This document shows positions 19,921 through 30,238 of a DNA stretch of 64,000 bases, piece after piece. The DNA lies in the sequence record OP617745.1. The stretch is one strand, 5' to 3'. The notes below the pieces were generated by a model that saw only the letters and a list, made by a program, of their open reading frames with translations, did no database searches and was not told the origin of the DNA. A program made the translations under genes and the position numbers. The stretch's first letter is position 1; every line of letters begins with the position of its first letter.

Positions 19921-20410
19921 ATGGAGGCGACTGTATTCAGTACTGAATCAATTGATCGTTGCGTAATCAGATTCAGTTAGCGTAGTATTAGCTGGGACGC
20001 GTACTTGTGAGCCGCAACCACAACGTACTTAAAATCCAACGCGTGGAGGGTAAGCATTCTGTACTGAATAGCAGAAGGGCTACAAAAACTTATACTTCAA
20101 AAAGGTTCGGGAAGTATTCGTAATAAACCGTTTAATCGTCTTATCAGTGCTATGAACAACCAATATATTTGTGGTGGATATTATTGGACTCAAGTAGATG
20201 ATGTTATCTTTGTACGCTTTCTAACCAAAAGGTCAGATAATAAAAATGTAAGAAAATTTCAGTACTGATAGCTGGAACCTTACTATAGTAAAAAGACCTG
20301 ATATGACTCGCTTAGGTCTTTAAATTATATAATGCGAGGGACGCTACGCCTTAGTTTAGGGCTAAATCGTAAGGATTGAGTACTAAACCGCCTTGAGAGT
20401 CCCAAGGCAA
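19921..20410 (+). ncRNA. large structured non-coding RNA candidate (~490 nt)
   Basis: No ORF >=60 aa, raised GC, nested helices TATTCAGTAC/GTACTGAATA, TATCAGTGCT/AGTACTGATA, AAGACCTGA/TTAGGTCTT, GCCTTG/CAAGGC. Confidence 0.6.
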
Positions 20411-20559
20411 CTTTTAATTTAAACAAATTTGTACAAAACACAAAAAGGTGATATAATGATTCTATCTGAAGAAGATTGGGGTGTTTATCCTAAAGACGAA
20501 TTTGATGGATTTTAATAAAAAATCTTGAACAAAAACAAAATAATGTGATATAATATTAG

Positions 20560-20687
20560 TACTGAATGAGGATAGGTGCAGTTGGTGAGATACCGCATGA
20601 GAAATCATAGACACCGTAGAAAGCGAAGGGCTTGGTGAGCGACGGCAATAGACAAGCATAGTAGAGGCTTGAAGAACTCATTTAGTA
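20560..20687 (+). ncRNA. structured RNA, copy 1 of duplicated motif
   Basis: Starts just after TTGAAC..TATAAT promoter; 11-bp closing stem TACTGAATGAG/CTCATTTAGTA; homologous to 21287..21386. Confidence 0.7.
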
Positions 20688-20792
20688 TTTTTTAATTTAA
20701 AGAATTATGCATTAGTTGTTTTAAATCAGTAAAACACCGAAGATGTAAGTACTATGTAGTATGTCAAAATCAAATATAATAAGAGTATACAT

Positions 20793-21266
20793 ATGAAAGT
20801 CAAATTGGGAAGTACTATCAAAGCAGGTTATACTGTTTCAGTTACAACGTGGGAAAATGATGGAGATAATTATCAAACAAATGACATTGTAGGTTTATCT
20901 AAAGAAGATGCCAAAATGTTTATTGATACTTTACCCATTTTTAAATCCGTTAATAGTAAAAAGAAAGGTCTTGGAAACAAAGAACTTAATATTAACCAGT
21001 ACTTGGGTAAGTTCGAAGACCTAATCAATAACAATATTATCACAGTGTCATTTGCTGAAAAATATTTTGGTTATATTAACCCAAATAGTGATTATGATGA
21101 AGATGAACAACAAGACACGATTATTGAAGCATTGTCTGAAATTCTAGGATATCCAGTTGAATACGATTATGGTTTTATCAGAGTCTTTGAAAAAGTTCAA
21201 GTACTCTTCTTCGATGAAGATACTGTAATTCCTTCAGGTTCGAAAGTAGACACCAGTACTTTATAA
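20793..21266 (+). CDS. hypothetical protein
   Basis: 157-aa ORF, TWENDGDNY motif. Confidence 0.8.
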   Translation: MKVKLGSTIKAGYTVSVTTWENDGDNYQTNDIVGLSKEDAKMFIDTLPIFKSVNSKKKGLGNKELNINQYLGKFEDLINNNIITVSFAEKYFGYINPNSDYDEDEQQDTIIEALSEILGYPVEYDYGFIRVFEKVQVLFFDEDTVIPSGSKVDTSTL

Positions 21267-21286
21267 CATATAAAATACAGAACAAA

Positions 21287-21386
21287 TACTGAATGAGGAT
21301 AGGTCATTGTGACCGGATGAAGTGAAAGGCTTGGTTAGCGACGGCAAAACCCAACCGTAGTAGAAGCTCTAGGAACTTATTCAGTA
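21287..21386 (+). ncRNA. structured RNA, copy 2 of duplicated motif
   Basis: TACTGAATGAG/CTTATTCAGTA closing stem; shared core GGCTTGGT.AGCGACGGCAA...TAGTAGA.GCT. Confidence 0.7.
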
Positions 21387-21407
21387 CATTTTAATTTAAA
21401 GAATTAT

Positions 21408-21503
21408 GCGGGTGTGGCGGTATTGGTTGTACGCAAAGGTCTTAAAAACCTTCAGAGGGCTTAAAATGCATTCCTCTTGTGAGTTCGAATCTCATCACCC
21501 GTA
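21408..21503 (+). tRNA. tRNA-Leu (UAA)
   Basis: GCGGGTG/CACCCGT acceptor, AAGGT-CTTAAAA-ACCTT anticodon arm, long variable arm, GTTCGAATC T-loop; CCA not encoded. Confidence 0.92.
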
Positions 21504-21523
21504 CTCATTAAATAGTCAATGGA

Positions 21524-22357
21524 TTGACACAAATGGCAAGAAAAGACATATTAGAACAAAAAGAATTAATATTAGATTTAATTTCCAAGAATACTACAAA
21601 ATCAACAATATGTAAGATTTTAAATTGTAAATCATCAACGTTAGATACGTATTTGAAAAAGATGGGTATTATATATAAAGGAAATCAATCTGGTAAAGGT
21701 AAAAAGAAGGGGATACATTCAAAATATGTCGAAGCTTCTAAATTTCTTAATAAAAATTCATCAATTAGTTCTAATCAATTAAAAAGAAAATTATTGAGAG
21801 AAGGATATTTTGAACACAAATGTTCAAAATGTGGATTAACTGAATGGATGGGTAAACCAATACCAATCGAACTTGAACATAAAGATGGTGATAACACCAA
21901 TAATGAAATAGAAAACTTATGTTTACTGTGTCCAAATTGTCATGCACAAACTGATACATATAAAGGTAAAAATATTAAATCAGTTCGTGAAAAGAAACAT
22001 ATACAAGAAATATTAGATTTTGAAAATTCTTTTGAACGTTCAAAAATAAAAGAACCAATAGAAAATAAAAAGAGAATTCTCAAAATCAAAGAAATTAAAA
22101 AGTGTGAGGAATGCGGTAATGAATATACTGGAAGATCCAAAAAATATTGTTCACATGCTTGTCTTCATTTATCACAAAGAAAATTTAATTTGACATATGA
22201 AGAATTAAAAGATATAATATGGAAATATCCAAGAACAAAAATTGGTGAAATGTATAATGTTTCGGATAATACTGTTCTTAAACGTTGTAGACTGCTAGGT
22301 ATAGAAGTTCCACCATTAGGATATTTTTTAAGTTCAGAATATAAAGATAAAAATTAG
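21524..22357 (+). CDS. free-standing HNH homing endonuclease
   Basis: CSKC...ELEHKDGDNTNNEIENLCLLCPNCH plus C-terminal Zn/HTH modules. Confidence 0.9.
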   Translation: MTQMARKDILEQKELILDLISKNTTKSTICKILNCKSSTLDTYLKKMGIIYKGNQSGKGKKKGIHSKYVEASKFLNKNSSISSNQLKRKLLREGYFEHKCSKCGLTEWMGKPIPIELEHKDGDNTNNEIENLCLLCPNCHAQTDTYKGKNIKSVREKKHIQEILDFENSFERSKIKEPIENKKRILKIKEIKKCEECGNEYTGRSKKYCSHACLHLSQRKFNLTYEELKDIIWKYPRTKIGEMYNVSDNTVLKRCRLLGIEVPPLGYFLSSEYKDKN

Positions 22358-22391
22358 TACTTAATTATTCAGTACTAAATACACCAACAAA

Positions 22392-22467
<76 letters not shown>

Positions 22468-22472
22468 AATTC

Positions 22473-22568
22473 AACAGGTAGTAACGCTCTTAGGTGTACA
22501 TTAATATAGGAATAAGGGTTAACAGTACTGTACACAAACGAGTAACCCCGAAAGACCCGAAACCTGTT
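22473..22568 (+). ncRNA. pseudoknot-containing structured RNA candidate
   Basis: AACAGGT/ACCTGTT closing stem, GTGTACA/TGTACAC stem, loop GGTTAAC complementary to downstream GTAACC. Confidence 0.5.
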
Positions 22569-22578
22569 AAAGTTTTAC

Positions 22579-22628
22579 GGATGATTATAAATCTGAATTG
22601 ACAGAAACAGCTAAAACTGTTATTATCC
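22579..22628 (+). ncRNA. 50-nt three-way-junction motif, copy 1
   Basis: GGATGAT-TATAAA-TCTG AATTGA CAGA-AACAG CTAAAA CTGTT-ATTATCC. Confidence 0.7.
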
Positions 22629-22636
22629 TATTTTAT

Positions 22637-22821
22637 TCCACAATCAGACGTATATGGTGTAAGTTACGTCGATGAAATCCAGAACAAGATCTCTGGTACT
22701 CTAGGAAGTGGTGAATGTTAACCTAGACGGGTTTGTTAATTGGACGATAAGCAATTAATACTTGACTAGCAGGTTTAAACTAGAGGTGACTGTCCTTCAC
22801 TATACTGGAAAACCGGGTGGA
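22637..22821 (+). ncRNA. multi-hairpin structured RNA candidate
   Basis: TCCAC/GTGGA closes hairpins GACGTA/TACGTC, CCAGA/TCTGG, CTAGG/CCTAG, TTAATTG/CAATTAA, CTAG/CTAG, GTGA/TCAC. Confidence 0.5.
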
Positions 22822-22830
22822 CTTTTAATT

Positions 22831-22867
22831 AAAAAGTGTTGAACAAAATGTTCAATAATGATATAAT
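22831..22867 (+). promoter_or_regulatory. tRNA-cluster promoter with TTGAAC-N5-GTTCAA palindrome
   Basis: TTGAAC-17-TATAAT with inverted repeat over -35. Confidence 0.8.
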
Positions 22868-22958
22868 AAGTATCAATGTAAGGCATGGAACAATGTTTAC
22901 AGAAGTTACTTAGTAGCCTGTACGCCCCATGTCAAGGTAGCCGAAAGGCAAGTTTAAT

Positions 22959-23008
22959 GGGTGGTTATAAATCTGAATTGACAGAGACTATTAAAACAGT
23001 CACCATCC
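22959..23008 (+). ncRNA. 50-nt three-way-junction motif, copy 2
   Basis: GGGTGGT-TATAAA-TCTG AATTGA CAGA-GACT..AGTC-ACCATCC. Confidence 0.7.
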
Positions 23009-23194
23009 AAATTTTAATTTAATAGTTTAGTATGAATAAAAAACAAATACATAAACATTATGATGAAATTGCAGTGAAGGTTTTTCGTGGTGAATTAGGT
23101 TATAAACCATCTGTTAAATCTAAATATTCAAAATCTTCTTCAATAAAGTTCAATCATAAAATAGAGTTTAAATAATACTGGACAATAATATATA

Positions 23195-23644
23195 ATGAAT
23201 ATCACTAATGTAAAAGATTTTTTAGAATATTTTATTAAGAATACTCGTGCACGTGATGAATTAGAAAAGAATGGATTCATCCAAGGTTACGATTGCACTA
23301 ATTTCTTTTATACTATAGATAAACATGAATATTATGTCGATGCAATTTTAATTGATGATGATGGGTATTGTGTTGGATTTTCGTTCGAAGATATATCACA
23401 AGATGCACCAATAAACTTTTATGCATTATATTATAATAAAAAAGATAATATTTTGAAATTAGGATTTACCAGTGACACGGATGAAGATGTTGTATTCAAT
23501 TGTAACACATGGTTGGAACATGATTCATTCTTTCAAAGTACATTAATTCATAACTTTATGACAACAGATTTAGAGTACTGGAAAAATTGCATAGAATTAC
23601 TTAATGTAATTTATAATGAACAAATCAAACAAAAATGGCAATAA
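23195..23644 (+). CDS. FQxS(T/L) C-terminal-motif family protein
   Basis: WLEHDSFFQSTLIHNF.TTDLEYWKNC. Confidence 0.8.
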   Translation: MNITNVKDFLEYFIKNTRARDELEKNGFIQGYDCTNFFYTIDKHEYYVDAILIDDDGYCVGFSFEDISQDAPINFYALYYNKKDNILKLGFTSDTDEDVVFNCNTWLEHDSFFQSTLIHNFMTTDLEYWKNCIELLNVIYNEQIKQKWQ

Positions 23645-23700
23645 TCACAGAACGGTTCAGCATTTGGTAGTATGTTTGACTGAATAAAGCATAAACGTGT

Positions 23701-23737
23701 AAAAAAGTGTTGAACAAAAAGTTCAGTACTATATAAT
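23701..23737 (+). promoter_or_regulatory. tRNA-cluster promoter
   Basis: TTGAAC AAAAA GTTCAG..TATAAT. Confidence 0.75.
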
Positions 23738-23748
23738 TGACTTACTAC

Positions 23749-23822
23749 GTCCCCTTAGTTCAGTTGGATAGAACAACTGCCTTCTAAGCAGTAGGTCACT
23801 GGTTCGAGTCCAGTAGGGGATA
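23749..23822 (+). tRNA. tRNA-Arg (UCU)
   Basis: GTCCCCT/AGGGGAT, ACTGC-CTTCTAA-GCAGT, GGTTCGAGTCC. Confidence 0.92.
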
Positions 23823-23869
23823 TACCATACAATATGGGAATAGTTAGAAGATATTCCCAATTTTAATTT

Positions 23870-23907
23870 AAAAAAGTGTTGAACAAAAAGTTCAATAATG
23901 ATATAAT
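23870..23907 (+). promoter_or_regulatory. tRNA-cluster promoter
   Basis: TTGAAC AAAAA GTTCAA..TGATATAAT. Confidence 0.8.
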
Positions 23908-23970
23908 GGTATTATAAAAGGTTGTAATACTTAATATTAACTTTTAAGAAGATAATTAGTATTATACACA

Positions 23971-24062
<92 letters not shown>

Positions 24063-24074
24063 TAAAATTCAATT

Positions 24075-24112
24075 AAAAAAGTGTTGAACAAAAAGTTCAA
24101 TGCTGATATAAT
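24075..24112 (+). promoter_or_regulatory. tRNA-cluster promoter
   Basis: TTGAAC AAAAA GTTCAA..TGATATAAT. Confidence 0.8.
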
Positions 24113-24120
24113 AAAAGAAT

Positions 24121-24211
<91 letters not shown>

Positions 24212-24219
24212 GATTTTAT

Positions 24220-24269
24220 GGATAGTTATAAAGTTGAATTAACAGCGACACTTAAAATTGTCACTATCC
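24220..24269 (+). ncRNA. 50-nt three-way-junction motif, copy 3
   Basis: GGATAGT-TATAAA-GTTG AATTAA CAGC-GACA..TGTC-ACTATCC. Confidence 0.7.
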
Positions 24270-24284
24270 AAATTTTAATTTAAA

Positions 24285-24319
24285 TAGTACTTGACAAAAA
24301 TGTTCAGTACTGATACAAT
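24285..24319 (+). promoter_or_regulatory. promoter of intron-containing tRNA
   Basis: TTGACA-17-TACAAT with GTTCAG half site. Confidence 0.7.
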
Positions 24320-24329
24320 AAAGAATATT

Positions 24330-24640
24330 GGCCCCTTAGCTCACGCTTTGGTTAGAGCAGACGACTCATCGATAAATGGTGACTTTCACAAGTAATTGTG
24401 ATTGAAAAACTGGATGAATTCAGGGAAACCTTAACACATAATGGTGATGGCAATCCTGAGCCAAGCCCAATAAGCGTATTGGGAAGGTGCAGAGACTAGG
24501 TGGTTCAGCACGATCTTGCTGTGTAATACACCAATAGCGTCCGGCATCCTTATAGGATGATGATATAGTCCTTTCTATAATGAAAATTATAGGTAAAAAG
24601 AATCGTTTGGTACTGTGTTCGACTCACAGAGGGGCCACCA
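24330..24640 (+). tRNA. tRNA-Ile2 (CAU, ileX-like) split by a group I intron; exons 24330..24369 and 24601..24640
   Basis: Joined exons give GGCCCCT/AGGGGCC acceptor, GACGA-CTCAT^AA-TCGTT anticodon arm, T arm and ACCA, closely like E. coli ileX. Confidence 0.88.
24370..24600 (+). mobile_element. group I intron (IC3-like), 231 nt, no ORF
   Basis: Preceded by U, ends in G; P1 TCAT^CG/TGGTGA with U.G; P3 CTGGATG/CGTCCGG; TCAGGGAAACC, GGCAATCCTGAGCCAAG, GAAGGTGCAGAGACTA, GATATAGTCC cores; P9 CTATAAT-GAAA-ATTATAG. Confidence 0.92.
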
Positions 24641-24643
24641 CAC

Positions 24644-24719
24644 ATTGTACTCTTCTCCCGTAAGGAGAATGACAAAAAGCTATCCTAAAGATAGAAAGCC
24701 TGAATTAACAGGGTGCAAT
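24644..24719 (+). ncRNA. permuted variant of the 50-nt motif
   Basis: ATTGTAC/GTGCAAT closes TTCTCC/GGAGAA, CTATC-CTAAA-GATAG and CCTG-AATTAA-CAGG hairpins. Confidence 0.55.
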
Positions 24720-24730
24720 TAAAATACATT

Positions 24731-24805
24731 GGTTCGTTGGCCTATTGGTCGGGCAGCAAACTGTTAATTTGCCTCAAACTAGTTCAATTCTAGTACGAAC
24801 CGCCA
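24731..24805 (+). tRNA. tRNA-Asn (GUU)
   Basis: GGTTCGT/ACGAACC, GCAAA-CTGTTAA-TTTGC, GCCA end. Confidence 0.92.
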
Positions 24806-24849
24806 TTTTTAATCCGAATGAACTGTAGTTCGATAAATAACATTAATAT

Positions 24850-25419
24850 ATGTTATTAAAGGACTACATTTTCATGGGAAGAAAACAATCAGAAGAAACA
24901 AAAAATAGAATTTCACAAGCTTTAAAAAATAAATCAATATCTCTTCCAGTCGAAGAAGTTATTGAAAAATATAAAAGTGGAATATCTATTGTAAAATTAT
25001 CACAGTACTATAAATGCAGTAAGTCAAAAATAAGTTCTATACTAAACGATAATAATATAAAATCAAATAGAATTTTAAATAAGAACAAGTTATGTGATAA
25101 ACATAACATTGAACATATACAACAACCAAATGGCAAATGGGTATGTTCACAATGTAATACTGAAAGAGTTTCTGAAAGACGTAGACAATTAAAAATCTTG
25201 GCAGTAGAATATAAAGGTGGATGTTGTGAAAAATGTGGATATAATAAATGCATAGCTGCGTTAGAATTTCATCACTTAGATCCTTCACAAAAAGATTTTT
25301 CTATTAGTAAAGAAGGAGTCACTCGTTCTTTTGATAAAATTAAAACAGAACTTGATAAATGTATTATGGTTTGTGCTAATTGTCATCGTGAAATTCATGA
25401 TGAAGAAAGAAAAGAATAA
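24850..25419 (+). CDS. free-standing HNH homing endonuclease
   Basis: NUMOD3-like GRKQSEETKNRIS, HTH, CEKCGY..C..ALEFHHLDP...LDKCIMVCANCHREIH. Confidence 0.9.
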   Translation: MLLKDYIFMGRKQSEETKNRISQALKNKSISLPVEEVIEKYKSGISIVKLSQYYKCSKSKISSILNDNNIKSNRILNKNKLCDKHNIEHIQQPNGKWVCSQCNTERVSERRRQLKILAVEYKGGCCEKCGYNKCIAALEFHHLDPSQKDFSISKEGVTRSFDKIKTELDKCIMVCANCHREIHDEERKE

Positions 25420-25487
25420 TGGGACATGTAGACGATAACACCAATATACTTCCAAAGGGTTGTGAGGTGCGTAATATTCCCACCAAT

Positions 25488-25617
25488 TTTGGACAAATCG
25501 TACTGAATTAGTACTGTAATAATAGACACTTATTGCTGTAAACTGGAATGCGGTATACATTCCTTCAGATACAGAGTGTGACAATACGATGTTAAAGGTA
25601 TCCTTTGACTGTCCAAA
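25488..25617 (+). ncRNA. branched structured RNA candidate
   Basis: TTTGGACA/TGTCCAAA, ATCGTA/TACGAT, ACACT/AGTGT, GAATG/CATTC, GTTAAAGG/CCTTTGAC. Confidence 0.55.
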
Positions 25618-25641
25618 TTAATTTAAATGGAGTACTGAATA

Positions 25642-25842
25642 ATGTCCAAATATGTTAATCGACAAAAACGAAAAGCACGTTCCAAGGATGAAATTCTACA
25701 GTTGATACAAAAAAATCAAAAAGATGTAGTTATTGAAGAATATATTTTTCAGTATGGTAATCAACGAGGAATGGTACAAGAAAGTAATGGTAAGTATCAT
25801 TCTGAGCATTACGATCTTATTAAAAGAATTCTATTGAAATAA
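25642..25842 (+). CDS. hypothetical protein
   Basis: ORF with GGAG RBS. Confidence 0.65.
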   Translation: MSKYVNRQKRKARSKDEILQLIQKNQKDVVIEEYIFQYGNQRGMVQESNGKYHSEHYDLIKRILLK

Positions 25843-25852
25843 GGAGAATTAC

Positions 25853-26047
25853 ATGTTTTGGAACCTAGTTTGTTTATTTGGTCGTACATTTGTATTAGCT
25901 GTTATTCATTCTCCTGGTATTAAAAACTTTGTTTCATACGAATTCAAAGAATCGTATCACAATAATACTGAAAAGCGTTCAGTTCAAATGTGCAAAGACT
26001 TTGGCATTGAGATGAAAGAGCCATTCAAAAAATATAGTGATGAATAA
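25853..26047 (+). CDS. hypothetical protein
   Basis: ORF with AGGAG RBS. Confidence 0.65.
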   Translation: MFWNLVCLFGRTFVLAVIHSPGIKNFVSYEFKESYHNNTEKRSVQMCKDFGIEMKEPFKKYSDE

Positions 26048-26079
26048 AGAAAGTAATCAATAATACCTATCATCTAATA

Positions 26080-26192
26080 TCAGTACTGATGCGTATCAGC
26101 AGATGGCTTGATGGGCAGTACTGACAGGATACATCGTTCGCCGGGTGCGGGTTCGGTGGATATACGTAAAGTCGTATTGGGTATGCCAAATA
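26080..26192 (+). ncRNA. GC-rich structured RNA candidate
   Basis: TCAGTACTG/CAGTACTGA, TTCGCCG/CGGTGGA, TACG/CGTA, TTGG/CCAA stems in an AT-rich background. Confidence 0.45.
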
Positions 26193-26208
26193 TAATAATA
26201 AAAATATG

Positions 26209-26289
26209 TAATAATGTGATAGCTCAAATAGGTAGAGCGGGAGGCCATAGTGCTGACTGGTTTGTGAGTTCAATTCTCACCCATTATTA
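26209..26289 (+). pseudogene. pseudo-tRNA / tRNA-like element
   Basis: D arm GCTC-AAATAGGTA-GAGC and T arm GTGAG-TTCAATT-CTCAC intact; acceptor shifted, no valid 7-nt anticodon loop. Confidence 0.7.
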
Positions 26290-26352
26290 ATAAAATTGTA
26301 AGCTACCCTGTTATTTGGGTAGCTTTTTCTTTTTATAACAAGAGAGATTATC

Positions 26353-26769
26353 ATGAGTAATGTTACTTTACTGAATATTTTACAAGAATGCTATGAAAAA
26401 CTTGAAAATTCCAATCCAAGTGTCATATTCAACTCATCATTTGATAATTATTCTACTTCAAATTATAAAGCAAAAATTTTAGTATATAATCACTTTGATT
26501 TATCATCATTAAGTGATTGTAGTAACATTTACTTACACATTTGTGACTACAATGATGATAGTGGATATACTATGACGATTGATATTTACAAAGGATATTT
26601 TTATTATAAAAATAAAAAATTTGACAATTTTGAAAATTTATTCCCATTGACTGAAGATACGATGTTTCAGTACTCAACACTTTATGACACATCCTCCTTG
26701 ACAATGGATGAGTTAAATTTTATAATGTCTATCAGTTTGGATATTCCAATTTATGAAGCAGCATTATAA
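26353..26769 (+). CDS. FQxS(T/L) C-terminal-motif family protein
   Basis: LTEDTMFQYSTLYD. Confidence 0.8.
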   Translation: MSNVTLLNILQECYEKLENSNPSVIFNSSFDNYSTSNYKAKILVYNHFDLSSLSDCSNIYLHICDYNDDSGYTMTIDIYKGYFYYKNKKFDNFENLFPLTEDTMFQYSTLYDTSSLTMDELNFIMSISLDIPIYEAAL

Positions 26770-26786
26770 AATCTAGGAGCATTTTT

Positions 26787-26945
26787 ATGAAAATTAAGTG
26801 TTTTGTATGTGATTGTGAAATTGATGAAAAGCATGTATATGGCGAATGGGATGATTACTGCTCTGACTGCTGGGAATCTGAAGGACGTGATGCAGAACGA
26901 TGGGAAGATGAGAGTGAATGGGATGAGGATGAGGATGAAGAATAA
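26787..26945 (+). CDS. 52-aa zinc-finger protein with acidic tail (not in ORF track)
   Basis: AGGAG RBS; MKIKCFVCDCE...YCSDCWE...WDEDEDEE. Confidence 0.7.
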   Translation: MKIKCFVCDCEIDEKHVYGEWDDYCSDCWESEGRDAERWEDESEWDEDEDEE

Positions 26946-27041
26946 ACGTATGTTTAAAGTACTGTTTCTTCATGCGTTTTAATTTATAGAGGCTGATTCA
27001 TTGAATCGGCCATTTTCTTTGTTAAAAAAAGAGATAAAAAT

Positions 27042-27449
27042 ATGAAAAAATTTCTTTCAAAAGAACACGAAAAAAATATTCTTAATGCATTGAGTGTATT
27101 TCCAGAGAGTGTTATAAGTAATAATAAGAATTCTACATATTATTATGGTAAAGGCAATTGGTTTTATTTTAGCGACAGTTCATATATGTGTGTATTAAAT
27201 CTATGTACTGAAGAATATTCTTATTGTTTAAGGATCGATCCTGGTCATAAATTAATCCTACTATGCGAAAAGAATTATGAATTTTATGAAAGTGATATAG
27301 ATGATACTGATTCATATATTAGTTATTTTTATCTTGAAGAAGAAAATTATTTTATGGATAGTACTGTGAATGAAATTACTATTCCTTTTAGTATAATGAA
27401 ACGTTCGCATGAATTTCTAAAATACAGCAGAGAAAAATTTCATGACTGA
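27042..27449 (+). CDS. FQxS(T/L) C-terminal-motif family protein
   Basis: LEEENYFMDSTVNE. Confidence 0.75.
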   Translation: MKKFLSKEHEKNILNALSVFPESVISNNKNSTYYYGKGNWFYFSDSSYMCVLNLCTEEYSYCLRIDPGHKLILLCEKNYEFYESDIDDTDSYISYFYLEEENYFMDSTVNEITIPFSIMKRSHEFLKYSREKFHD

Positions 27450-27831
27450 TATAAATGAAGTTATAGAGCATTTTTATAATTGGGTACTAACGGATCCAAT
27501 AAAAACTGGATTAATTGAAAAATATAACTGCTCTATGTATTCTTATTGTTCAAATAAAGCTACGATGTATAGTAAGGATGTTGATAATTATTTACTAATC
27601 TCTGACTATGTAGTTTATGATGTATTTGACAATGAAATTGTCATTGATGGTGGTGATGTTGATATTGTAAAATTACATGATATAGATTTCTCATGTACTG
27701 AATCAGCGGCGTTTCAATTAAGCACATTATATGATTTCCGATGCAGTACCGAGAATATAGCATTACTTCTTGAAATTGTACTTATATTGAGAAAAAAGAC
27801 AGAAAGCAGAAAACAAAGGAATTTTTTATAA
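27442..27831 (+). CDS. FQxS(T/L) C-terminal-motif family protein
   Basis: CTESAAFQLSTLYDF. Confidence 0.8.
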   Translation: MTDINEVIEHFYNWVLTDPIKTGLIEKYNCSMYSYCSNKATMYSKDVDNYLLISDYVVYDVFDNEIVIDGGDVDIVKLHDIDFSCTESAAFQLSTLYDFRCSTENIALLLEIVLILRKKTESRKQRNFL

Positions 27832-28277
27832 TGAATATTACTAATGTTAAACTAATTTTTGAAAACTGTGAAGCAATAGACATTCCTTTTAATGATATAT
27901 TGTTTTTGCATATAGGGAAAGAGTACAAAAAAACACATAGAACTTTTAATTCTTTGTCTATAGAAACAGTTTTAAAAGAATTTGCTATTGCACTGAATAA
28001 GGATATTGAATGTAATTTCTGGAATAACCAGAGCATCGAAGAAAGACTTGCTATGCGTGATATAACATGGGTAGAACTGTGTAATAATAATGAGAAAGTA
28101 TCATATTATATTGAATGGCCTGAATACGATGAACATTATAGTACTGCACAACGTTTGCAGTACACACCAGATGGTAATTTAATTTTTACCAGTTCTACTC
28201 AATCATTCATCAAAATCGAAACTGATGATATCGATCATATGGCTAAATCAATTGGGATGTACGGACATGAAAAATGA
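27831..28277 (+). CDS. hypothetical protein
   Basis: TAATG coupling. Confidence 0.75.
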   Translation: MNITNVKLIFENCEAIDIPFNDILFLHIGKEYKKTHRTFNSLSIETVLKEFAIALNKDIECNFWNNQSIEERLAMRDITWVELCNNNEKVSYYIEWPEYDEHYSTAQRLQYTPDGNLIFTSSTQSFIKIETDDIDHMAKSIGMYGHEK

Positions 28278-28710
28278 AAACGACGAGGATTTTATAAAAA
28301 TTCATTTAAAAAGAACCTGGACAGATGTTACATCAGGTGATATAATGAACGTAGAATATAGCACAGAAAAGATTTTAGTTAAAAACCAACTTAATGCAAA
28401 TGATGAAGCAAATGATTTCATTGAAAAAAATGTTGGCGTTTATGTTCTTGATGGAATAGAATATAAAACTGAACTCATCGAGAAGGATGTTATGCAAGAT
28501 AAACAGGTCTTTTTAACTAAAGAACAAATGTTCGATTTTATTCTCAATAATACTGTGACAATCATTCCAGATAACACCATCTGGACTGATGAAAATGGTA
28601 ATAAAGTCAAAAAGAAATATACGGTATCGATTAATTCAACATCAATGAGTGGGTTTGACTTAGAAGATGCTATTAATTACTACGTAAACAATAGGAGTTC
28701 AATGAAATGA
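28225..28710 (+). CDS. hypothetical protein
   Basis: Tiled ORF; start probably near 28267. Confidence 0.7.
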   Translation: MISIIWLNQLGCTDMKNENDEDFIKIHLKRTWTDVTSGDIMNVEYSTEKILVKNQLNANDEANDFIEKNVGVYVLDGIEYKTELIEKDVMQDKQVFLTKEQMFDFILNNTVTIIPDNTIWTDENGNKVKKKYTVSINSTSMSGFDLEDAINYYVNNRSSMK

Positions 28711-29036
28711 TATTCATCATTGTAGCAGTTATTTGTTGTGTTACGGTTATTATATGTAAATCAATTCAGGTAAAAAGTTATCATAAAGCACTGGAGATGG
28801 AAAAGAATTTATATAGTACTGAAATTCTTTGTGAAGACCCTAATGCGAAAAAATCACCATATTCACTAACAAGAGAACTCCATGTAGAATCAGAAACATG
28901 GGGATGGACTGTAAACAGAAACGGTGAAAAAGTCAAAAGTTCAAATGGTTATTATCAAATTCTCAACTTAGATAAAGCACAAGAACTGATGAATACTATG
29001 GAAAAAATTGATGGATACAAAATAACCAAATTTTAA
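28707..29036 (+). CDS. membrane-anchored hypothetical protein
   Basis: N-terminal TM helix. Confidence 0.7.
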   Translation: MIFIIVAVICCVTVIICKSIQVKSYHKALEMEKNLYSTEILCEDPNAKKSPYSLTRELHVESETWGWTVNRNGEKVKSSNGYYQILNLDKAQELMNTMEKIDGYKITKF

Positions 29037-29053
29037 TCCAGGAGAAAATATAT

Positions 29054-29392
29054 ATGGATATTAGTAGTACTATAAAATTCTTGGCAGAGAATTTTGAAAA
29101 GATTATCACAAGGGGTGGTTTAATAGTTCACCCCAATACGAATATTATGTATCAAATTAGGTTTGACACTCAGTCTTACGATCAAGTACTTGTATTTTCC
29201 AAGTTCAATGATTATAAAGAAGTAGTGATGTTTTGTTGTACAGAATTTGGTGTATATATCAAAGATACTGAAACTCAAACAATTTCCCATTACTTTTACC
29301 ATACATTAATGGGTACTGATTTATTTGGTCTTAAATTTAATGATTTGGCTAATTTACATTACATGTTCAAACACTATCCACACACTAACTAA
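29054..29392 (+). CDS. hypothetical protein
   Basis: AGGAG RBS. Confidence 0.7.
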   Translation: MDISSTIKFLAENFEKIITRGGLIVHPNTNIMYQIRFDTQSYDQVLVFSKFNDYKEVVMFCCTEFGVYIKDTETQTISHYFYHTLMGTDLFGLKFNDLANLHYMFKHYPHTN

Positions 29393-29401
29393 GGAAGTAC
29401 A

Positions 29402-30238
29402 ATGAAAAATATTATTTTTAAAAACATTGCGTTTGTAAAAGATCTATACACTGGTGCATATGTATCTGGTAATAAACTAATTATCTCTGCTGGTAATGAT
29501 TATGAAGTGCAATTTGAGTCCAGTGATAAGGCATTTGAAGGTTTAACTGAACTTGATAGTCTGTTGAATGCAGAAGAACATACCAAATCAGCCAAAGCAA
29601 GTACTGTTTCTGATGAAATTACTTCTCTCTTGAACGGTATTAAAAACGGTTCAGTACTGAATACTATTAACGGCATTAATGATAAACTTCGTAATAAAGT
29701 AAGTTCATTAAAAAACGATGCACAAGAAAAAGCAATGGAAATCGCATTTGAAAAACTATTTAAAGAAGGTTCACTTGCTATCGATAAAGCTATTTCTGAT
29801 CTGGACAACGCTTTCAACGTTCTGTTCCCTGAAGATGAAACAGAAACACCAAAACAACAAAATACAACTAGCACAAAACCCACTGAAAGCACAGAAAGTA
29901 CAGAAAGTATTAAATCCAAAAAATTTAACATTGATGATATTTTTAGTACTCTAAATGTTGGTCAGGATCAAAGTGTACTAACTTTTGATAAAATCATGGC
30001 TTCTGATAAGATCATTGATGATATGACATGTACTGAACTTCGTCGTATTATTGAGATTTTCATTGATGAAATTGTGAATTCCGAAAAAGGTAAAGAGATG
30101 ATTGATTCAATCAAAACCAATTTTGGTACAGCAGAAGTTGATGCCGCGATCCAGAAAATCAAAGATACTGCATATCAGGTTTGTATTGAAAATTCAAAAC
30201 TAACATTTGCTGATGTGATGCAAAAATACTTCTTTTAA
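29402..30238 (+). CDS. hypothetical helical protein
   Basis: 278-aa ORF with T/E/S-rich linker; followed by terminator. Confidence 0.8.
   Translation: MKNIIFKNIAFVKDLYTGAYVSGNKLIISAGNDYEVQFESSDKAFEGLTELDSLLNAEEHTKSAKASTVSDEITSLLNGIKNGSVLNTINGINDKLRNKVSSLKNDAQEKAMEIAFEKLFKEGSLAIDKAISDLDNAFNVLFPEDETETPKQQNTTSTKPTESTESTESIKSKKFNIDDIFSTLNVGQDQSVLTFDKIMASDKIIDDMTCTELRRIIEIFIDEIVNSEKGKEMIDSIKTNFGTAEVDAAIQKIKDTAYQVCIENSKLTFADVMQKYFF

Follow-up and report, generated by a model that had tools for sequence, protein, structure and literature searches.

A group I intron in the anticodon loop of a tRNA-Ile2 (CAU) gene of Klebsiella phage KP13-7 and related jumbo phages

The stretch of DNA analyzed here (the window) comprises 64,000 nucleotides of sequence record OP617745.1, the 357.7-kb genome of Klebsiella phage KP13-7, a RaK2-like jumbo phage of the genus Alcyoneusvirus. 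Positions 20000–30000 of the window were 100% identical to that genome, and record coordinates are obtained by adding 62000 to window coordinates. A 311-nt gene on the plus strand (24330–24640), encoding a tRNA with the anticodon CAU, was found to be interrupted by a 231-nt group I intron (24370–24600) without an open reading frame (ORF). We consider it likely that the phage has here a working gene for its AUA-decoding tRNA-Ile2, split by a mobile group I intron of phage type at the site known from Azoarcus. An earlier reading of the same DNA from its letters and ORFs (the sequence-only reading) had proposed a group I intron within a phage tRNA(CAU) gene here, and all elements of the split gene were recovered where it had placed them.

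The search with group I models that the sequence-only reading had suggested as a check returned a clear match. The Rfam model Intron_gpI (RF00028) aligned to 24344–24592 on the plus strand with 104.1 bits (E = 6.4e-26; gathering score 50), and the homologous alleles in other phages scored 95 and 90 bits. The intron is inserted in the anticodon loop between U36 and A37, which is the Azoarcus-type “Ile2.5Ug” site, also occupied in bacterial examples (Williams, 2020), as the sequence-only reading had maintained. U is the last base of the 5′ exon and A the first of the 3′ exon, and the intron runs from a C to a G; because the bases flanking each junction differ, the boundaries cannot be shifted. 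As also predicted, a U.G wobble marks the 5′ splice site (U-1 at 24369 with G 24379, intron position G10) and a terminal (omega) G lies at 24600, and both were kept in all three exon backgrounds in which the intron occurred. The intron is probably competent for splicing, which would depend on guanosine. No homing endonuclease is encoded within its 231 nt.

Deleting 24370–24600 joins two 40-nt exons into an 80-nt cloverleaf with a CAU anticodon and an encoded CCA end (GGCCCCU/UA/GCUC-loop-GAGC/A/GACGA-CUCAUAA-UCGUU/UGGUA/CUGUG-UUCGACU-CACAG/AGGGGCC/ACCA). The 5′ exon (24330–24369, plus strand) supplies the 5′ strand of the acceptor stem, the D arm with a 12-nt loop, the 5′ strand of the anticodon stem and C32–U36, and the 3′ exon (24601–24640, plus strand) supplies A37–A38, the 3′ strand of the anticodon stem, the variable loop, the T arm, the 3′ strand of the acceptor stem and ACCA. 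A sigma-70-like promoter (TTGACA-17-TACAAT with an extended TG; 24291–24319, plus strand) ends 10 nt upstream of the tRNA 5′ end and, at 11/12 consensus positions, was the best promoter-like match in 23600–25600. The gene had escaped annotation in all seven GenBank phage records that contain it. In the window, ARAGORN called no tRNA between 24211 and 24731, and its intron mode applied to the genomic locus returned nothing at 95% or 90% of threshold and spurious calls at 80%, in keeping with the expectation that tRNA finders would overlook such a gene.

The fold of the intron was assessed in an alignment of 18 sequences (alignment A1), namely the three alleles from tRNA genes and 15 viral introns related to them, under a model of 70 base pairs covering P1, P2, P3, P4, P5/P5a, P6/P6a, P7, P8, P9.0, P9 and an extension. 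Standard pairs occupied 87.7% of the 1,242 cells, compared with 32–40% when the 3′ partners were slid by 1–3 columns, and two-sided changes were present at 46 of the 70 pairs. The covariation score was 0.468 (0.07–0.09 in the slid controls), and none of 500 shuffles reached the observed pairing or covariation values. Pairing was 97–100% in P3, P4, P6, P6a, P7, and P8, and by covariation the P3/P7 pseudoknot and the P3–P9 core are present. The contact between loop L2 and P8 covaried in 18 of 18 sequences, GNAA loops occurring where P8 has a C:G pair and GNGA loops where it has U:A, which matches the known GNRA-receptor rule. Given the covariation and this tertiary contact, the element is a folded group I ribozyme and more than a sequence match.

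All helices lie on the plus strand. Because the intron sits in the anticodon loop, its guide sequence pairs with the UCAU of that loop: P1 (24366–24382), read from the sequence, consists of UCAU plus CG (24366–24371) paired with UGGUGA (24377–24382) in 6 bp, and the +1/+9 pair of its extension is compensatory, C-G being replaced by G-C in the Klebsiella phage assembly OU509535. P2 (24386–24401) is a hairpin with a GUAA tetraloop (L2) in which all six pairs have changed on both sides. The 5′ strand of P3 (24410–24416) pairs with 24538–24544 (99% paired, three two-sided pairs). The P4-P5-P6 domain (24420–24488) comprises P4 (24420–24425 with 24454–24459; 100% paired), P5/P5a (24429–24450), and P6/P6a (24460–24488; 100 and 99% paired), with many compensatory changes. 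P7, which is expected to be the guanosine-binding helix and to form a pseudoknot with P3, has its 5′ strand, including a bulged A, at 24492–24498 and its partner at 24566–24571 (100% paired, one compensatory change from G-C to A-U). Between P7 and P3′ lies a nested extension resembling P7.1/P7.1a (24499–24532), with two-sided changes in eight of nine pairs; its outer stem (24499–24502 with 24529–24532, 4 bp) was 85% paired, its inner hairpin (24506–24521, 5 bp) 81% paired, and its internal loop is a conserved GUAAUA. Covariation likewise placed P3′ (24538–24544), the P8 hairpin (24545–24559), J8/7 and P7′ (24566–24571) within 24538–24571. The 3′ end (24572–24600) holds a 2-bp P9.0 (24572–24573 with 24598–24599), a 7-bp P9 hairpin with a GAAA loop (24575–24592; 75% paired, six two-sided pairs), and the terminal G.

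BLAST searches of cultured phages returned the intron at 99.7–100% identity in KP13-7, RCIP0023, Muenster, and phiKp_21, at 91% in OU509535, and at ∼89% in the Escherichia coli phages TH47 and Turkey5. At the KP13-7 locus the intron is carried by KP13-7, RCIP0023, phiKp_21, Muenster, and OU509535, whereas RaK2 and K64-1 have an uninterrupted tRNA(CAU) gene at the same locus and behind the same promoter, giving one contiguous 90% match to the joined flanks. That close relatives differ in whether exactly this site is occupied indicates that the intron is, or recently was, mobile. The intron-less RaK2 gene (locus L003, 756–833; JQ513383.1, ∼178885–178962) is itself unannotated in GenBank and is called by ARAGORN at default settings. 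The three tRNA(CAU) exon backgrounds that host the intron are divergent: KP13-7 and OU509535 are 91.3% identical in the intron against 62.7% in the exons, and the E. coli phage genomes share only ∼5% of a 10-kb KP13-7 query. The tRNA(CAU) exons differ in the manner of swapped cassettes (63–85% identity).

Homing endonuclease genes, absent from the intron itself, occur nearby as free-standing HNH genes only. In KP13-7, a gene 3′ of tRNA-Asn (24874–25419, plus strand; Pfam NUMOD3 22 bits, HNH weak) has a counterpart annotated as an HNH endonuclease in the Muenster record, where the NUMOD3-HNH gene likewise follows tRNA-Asn, and its product is a candidate trans-acting homing enzyme. HNH orthologues that are 69–71% identical lie directly 3′ of tRNA(CAU) in intron-less RaK2 and in intron-bearing Turkey5/TH47, and OU509535 has a different HNH gene in that position. 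Altogether, at least three unrelated free-standing HNH genes occupy varying slots around the tRNA(CAU) and tRNA-Asn genes of different phages (window 24874–25419; L003, 853–1560; L004, 1825–2529; L006, 1504–1929), and the locus looks like a homing hotspot.

A reading compatible with that of a functional tRNA-Ile2 gene, and one that we regard as possible but doubtful, is that the intron persists mainly by interrupting the DNA that free-standing HNH enzymes would target in the tRNA(CAU) genes of competing phages, through collaborative homing or immunity. Collaborative homing is an established pathway, HNH genes adjoin tRNA(CAU) or tRNA-Asn in RaK2, Turkey5/TH47, OU509535, and KP13-7, and exchanged exon cassettes are what co-conversion would yield. 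However, among the phages compared the presence of the intron showed no simple correlation with any single HNH gene, so that collaborative homing is put forward here as a hypothesis.

Whether the gene is still of use to the phage can be judged in part from codon demand. The G+C content of the window is 30.6%, and across its 69 long ORFs AUA accounts for 19.7% of isoleucine codons (16.1 per thousand of all codons), several-fold above its use in E. coli; AUA is a rare codon in the enterobacterial hosts. The codons read by the remaining tRNAs of the cluster also end in A or U. Were the intron no longer able to splice, or were the spliced RNA unable to serve as a tRNA, the gene would be a decaying relic, and several observations weigh against the functional tRNA-Ile2 gene that we favor. 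The 12-nt D-loop is unusual, 4 nt longer than that of E. coli ileX, and because of it ARAGORN found the spliced KP13-7 tRNA only at 95% of threshold; the sequence-only reading was thus right about the cloverleaf and its coordinates and slightly overstated the case in calling the product a perfect ileX-like tRNA. P5a is poorly supported in alignment A1 (50% paired), the weak P10 would have to compete with the anticodon stem, and our survey for tRNA(CAU) genes covered the window portion of the phage genome. A relic would also fit with the lack of a homing endonuclease to maintain the intron and with other phages managing with an intron-less allele.

Still, we judge decay to be quite unlikely, as compensatory changes have held every core helix intact across the alleles, the exon cloverleaf is retained in three divergent alleles, the promoter is intact, AUA demand is high, and the whole 311-nt gene is 99.7–100% identical in four Klebsiella phage genomes. 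When the D-loop was shortened to match ileX, ARAGORN called the spliced tRNA at default settings, as it did the spliced products of Turkey5 and OU509535. The four extra D-loop bases of KP13-7 lie within 24344–24349 (ACGCUUUGGUUA vs. AGUGGUUA in ileX), and the 12-nt loop is identical in the four Klebsiella phage genomes.

A CAU anticodon would also suit an elongator tRNA-Met, an identity that the sequence-only reading had ranked behind tRNA-Ile2 without discarding it, and the intron-less homologues are called tRNA-Met by ARAGORN and in most GenBank records. We regard this assignment as improbable. The ARAGORN label carries no weight because the program also gives it to the E. coli tRNA-Ile copy that we inspected, which adjoins mug, the position that we take to be that of ileX. 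Across 5,426 complete E. coli genomes, every match among the matches listed (E ≤ 0.01) was annotated as tRNA-Ile, with no tRNA-Met among them. Identity to the E. coli tRNA-Ile was 84%, the acceptor stem (GGCCCCU), D stem, and anticodon loop were identical, and C4:G69, C5:G68, and G27.U43, identity elements for the lysidine synthetase TilS in E. coli, were all present as in the E. coli copy; the record of phage ph0011 names its homologue tRNA-Ile.

With regard to intron subgroup, IC3 introns are told from IA2 introns by having no peripheral element between P7 and P3′ (PMC4498298), and IA2 introns carry two hairpins there, P7.1 and P7.2, joined by G-U-A (PMC3428280, PMC4227781), as well as an extended P9 domain of P9.0, P9.1, and P9.2 (PMC4227781). 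The sequence-only reading had noted IC3-type conserved strings. Such core strings are indeed held in common with IC3 introns, and the insertion in a tRNA anticodon loop, between U36 and A37, is also IC3-like, but the assignment to IC3 fails on the 34 nt at 24499–24532, which covary and lie exactly between P7 and P3′, and which are therefore an extension of the IA kind. The extension lies at the place of P7.1 and P7.2 and has a conserved GUA(AUA); covariation favors a single nested hairpin, and a drawing as two tandem hairpins was set aside because the double changes favor the nested outer stem. The P9 region, a 2-bp P9.0 and a single 7-bp hairpin followed by the terminal G, is not of the extended IA2 form. 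The td intron of phage T4 (IA2) similarly combines an IC3-like core with an extension between P7 and P3 (PMC4498298), and differs in its two hairpins and extended P9.0–P9.2 from the one nested hairpin and single P9 of KP13-7. With the extension of IA kind but nested, and P9 a single hairpin, we assign no formal subgroup. The td intron bears an endonuclease ORF, unlike the KP13-7 intron.

Beyond the tRNA-hosted alleles, the nearest BLAST relatives were ORF-less introns splitting the terminase gene of Vibrio phages (77–82% identity), together with intron 2 in psbA of Synechococcus phage S-CBWM1 and Staphylococcus phage introns. A wider set of ∼120 viral and ∼120 bacterial loci was gathered by P6-to-P7 core strings. 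The alignment of its best viral matches continued across the extension, and a split-tRNA call was obtained for none of them. One of these introns interrupts a ribonucleotide reductase gene and another lies ahead of a DNA polymerase exonuclease domain; for the exon downstream of the commonest IMG/VR relatives, neither PHROGs nor Pfam returned a family. The ORF-less protein-gene introns (Vibrio terminase, S-CBWM1 psbA intron 2, IMG/VR reductase and polymerase) are thus closest, with 73–82% identity over core and extension, and share the size class, the lack of an ORF, and the nested P7 extension with its GUAAUA loop; they differ in interrupting coding sequences, where the KP13-7 intron interrupts a tRNA anticodon loop. 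The intron had no match in the 5,426 E. coli genomes and just two short ones, both to the core, in Bacillus plasmids.

Bacterial tRNA introns ceased to align where the KP13-7 extension starts. P7 and P7′ are spaced 67 nt apart in KP13-7; median spacings were 65 nt for viral introns outside tRNA genes, 45 nt for bacterial tRNA introns, and 40 nt for viral tRNA introns. Bacterial introns at the same Ile2 site (loci L206, L140, and L044; GGACUCAU/A…CAAACCGG/AAUCC) run from P7 straight into P3′, with a spacing of 38–49 nt. A similar extension does occur in some bacterial tRNA introns, most of them in tRNA-Gln(CUG), so the feature is not confined to phages. These newer bacterial tRNA introns (Williams, 2020) share with KP13-7 the tRNA host, the nested P7 extension, and a UAAU-type internal loop, and differ in occupying other tRNAs and sites, in residing in bacterial genomes, and in falling outside the clade of the KP13-7 intron.

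In the maximum-likelihood tree, the three tRNA(CAU) phage introns fell in a 24-row clade (Shimodaira–Hasegawa-like approximate likelihood ratio test, SH-aLRT, 96) that was entirely viral and whose other 21 rows lie outside tRNA genes. The approximately unbiased (AU) test rejected their grouping with bacterial tRNA(CAU) introns (p = 0.018), a result weakened by the mixed nature of the bacterial tRNA(CAU) group itself, and likewise rejected a grouping with the full set of bacterial tRNA introns that lack the extension (p = 1e-4). The latter rejection persisted after removal of the extension columns (p = 5e-5); resolution fell, and the nearest rows were still ribonucleotide reductase and terminase introns. 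Since the alignment is short (145–174 columns), only the broad placement should be trusted. The comparison with bacterial tRNA introns that the sequence-only reading had called for thus went against a close kinship with those lacking the extension, and the contrast it had drawn with classical phage introns was not supported, as the KP13-7 intron groups with the introns of phage protein genes. Judged from these comparisons, it belongs to the phage protein-gene intron family and not to the classical bacterial tRNA introns.

The remaining alternative, implied by the sequence-only reading, that an Azoarcus-type IC3 intron was acquired by a phage together with a bacterial tRNA-Ile gene, shares with our reading the tRNA(CAU) host, the insertion after U36, U-1.G and terminal G, an ORF-less compact ribozyme of ∼200–230 nt, P4–P6 and P7 core strings, and L2-P8 and L9 tetraloop features like those of compact IC3 ribozymes, but is very improbable given the 34-nt covarying extension of the KP13-7 intron, which the bacterial introns at this site lack, the all-viral clade and the AU tests, the placement of Azoarcus-type introns, from a betaproteobacterium genome, in another part of the tree, and the intron-less state of enterobacterial ileX.

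One further sequence bears on exchange among these introns. The P9 region of the OU509535 intron (L006, ∼1430–1470; GCCUUUACGAAAGUAUUGGAU) is near-identical to that of the terminase intron of Vibrio phage R16F (L009), and the rest of the OU509535 intron resembles that of KP13-7, which suggests a mosaic produced by recombination between introns.

On the reading that we favor, of a functional tRNA-Ile2 gene split by a phage-type intron, the gene's own strong sigma-70-type promoter would yield a precursor of ∼320 nt, in which the 231-nt intron would fold into a compact group I ribozyme with P1–P9 and the nested P7–P3′ extension. U33–U36 of the anticodon loop would pair with the guide sequence of the intron, with U36.G as the wobble; an external guanosine would attack after U36, the terminal G (24600) would then enter the same site, and ligation of the exons would restore the loop CUCAUAA. 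Host enzymes would trim the tRNA ends, and host TilS would be expected to convert C34 to lysidine, allowing charging with isoleucine and the reading of AUA. Splicing might then gate the supply of this tRNA, or the precursor might conceal the anticodon loop, as the sequence-only reading had suggested. As to origin, an intron of the phage protein-gene family would have independently taken the anticodon-loop site used by the Azoarcus IC3 intron, and would since have passed from one tRNA(CAU) allele to another and between jumbo phages of Klebsiella and of E. coli, probably by recombination during co-infection or with the help of the free-standing HNH endonucleases of the cluster.

The cluster around the locus includes tRNA genes called by ARAGORN as Leu-UAA, Gly-UCC, Arg-UCU, Ser-GCU, Ser-UGA, and Asn-GUU. 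Near-consensus sigma-70-type promoters (10–11/12) at 23710–23737, 23879–23907, 24084–24112, and 24291–24319 each precede one gene (tRNA-Arg, the two tRNA-Ser, and tRNA(CAU)), suggesting that tRNA genes of the cluster are transcribed individually and not as one operon. The ∼90-nt spacer between tRNA(CAU) and tRNA-Asn contains a cloverleaf-shaped element (24645–24718, plus strand), a neighbor of the intron and not part of it, that would form a four-way junction of a 6-bp closing stem and three hairpins (24 pairs, three of them compensatory among four phages). It is kept between Klebsiella and E. coli jumbo phages, had no match to an Rfam family, and is replaced by an HNH gene in RaK2, Turkey5, and OU509535. 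The element may be a small stable RNA, comparable to those in the tRNA cluster of phage T4.

A review of bacterial group I introns in 2014 found all phage introns then known in protein genes, despite the many phage tRNAs (PMC3984707), and in 2019 phage tRNA introns were still regarded as unreported (PMC6784885). Devoto et al. (2019) described “enigmatic” introns in tRNAs of Lak megaphages, said to be the first reported in phage tRNAs. Like the KP13-7 intron, these lie in phage tRNA genes that bacterial-mode tRNA finders miss; they are found by tRNAscan in eukaryote mode, were not reported as group I introns, and one may itself encode a tRNA, whereas model match and fold identify the KP13-7 intron as a genuine group I intron. 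The catalog of 5,292 tRNA group I introns was drawn from bacterial genomes only and counts Ile2.5Ug among four classical types, all of them IC3 (Williams, 2020). In the literature that we searched, neither the KP13-7 intron nor any other group I intron of a phage tRNA gene is described, and the combination of a phage-type group I intron with a phage tRNA gene seems not to have been described before.

The rarity presumed by the sequence-only reading agrees with that literature and less well with the sequences, which held further unannotated cases. A split-tRNA call was obtained in 41 of 119 pattern-positive IMG/VR contigs, several of them inside arrays of 5–11 tRNAs; part of those outside arrays could be host tRNAs at prophage ends. 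As automatic remapping of U-1 and the omega G was ambiguous per locus, tRNA types are named only for loci whose junction was readable by eye. Agrobacterium phage Atu_ph07 (MF403008.1), a cultured phage of 490 kb, carries a tRNA-Leu(UAA) gene, not annotated in its record, that is split at the classical “CUU/a…g/AAAA” site by an intron (L254, ∼1196–1556) that scored just below the Rfam threshold (48.9 bits, E = 1.5e-11), and a 735-kb uncultured phage (LR756501) matched the same query. A coding sequence for a “hypothetical protein” has been called over the 3′ part of the Atu_ph07 gene. With Atu_ph07 and the tRNA arrays of uncultivated phages, group I introns in phage tRNA genes appear overlooked rather than unique. 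In a 103-kb IMG/VR contig (L060, 6290–6660), a group I intron of 89.9 bits with a similar P7 extension lies in a seven-tRNA array; its 5′ junction (CGGCUCAU/AAUAUUGUGAC) is like that of KP13-7, the matching 5′ half-tRNA is ∼65 nt further upstream, and there may have been a second insertion at this locus. A scan of IMG/VR for further tRNA(CAU) copies by exact pattern (GACTCAT…GTGACTTTCA) gave two hits, both by chance in unrelated DNA.

A broader and tentative reading, to which we give no more than limited credence, joins these observations: group I introns would be a recurrent, overlooked component of tRNA genes in large phages, of at least two lineages (the phage protein-gene type, and a tRNA-Leu IC3 type in Atu_ph07 and uncultivated phages), and the intron of RaK2-like phages would cooperate with HNH genes, shielding anticodon-loop DNA and spreading by co-conversion. 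If so, a tRNA gene rather than a protein gene would be the arena of homing competition between phages.

The finding places a genuine group I intron in a tRNA gene of phages that infect Klebsiella and E. coli and that are cultured and tractable. It implies that a lineage of phage-type introns can switch from coding sequence to a tRNA anticodon loop as its target, and its arrival at the site of the unrelated Azoarcus intron bears on what makes that site permissive. Because the AUA decoder is unannotated in every record of these jumbo phages, which are therapeutic candidates, analyses of their tRNA complement and codon usage are distorted. KP13-7 and RaK2/K64-1 provide a natural intron-plus/intron-minus pair in which the mobility of ORF-less introns, and its link to free-standing endonucleases, may be studied.

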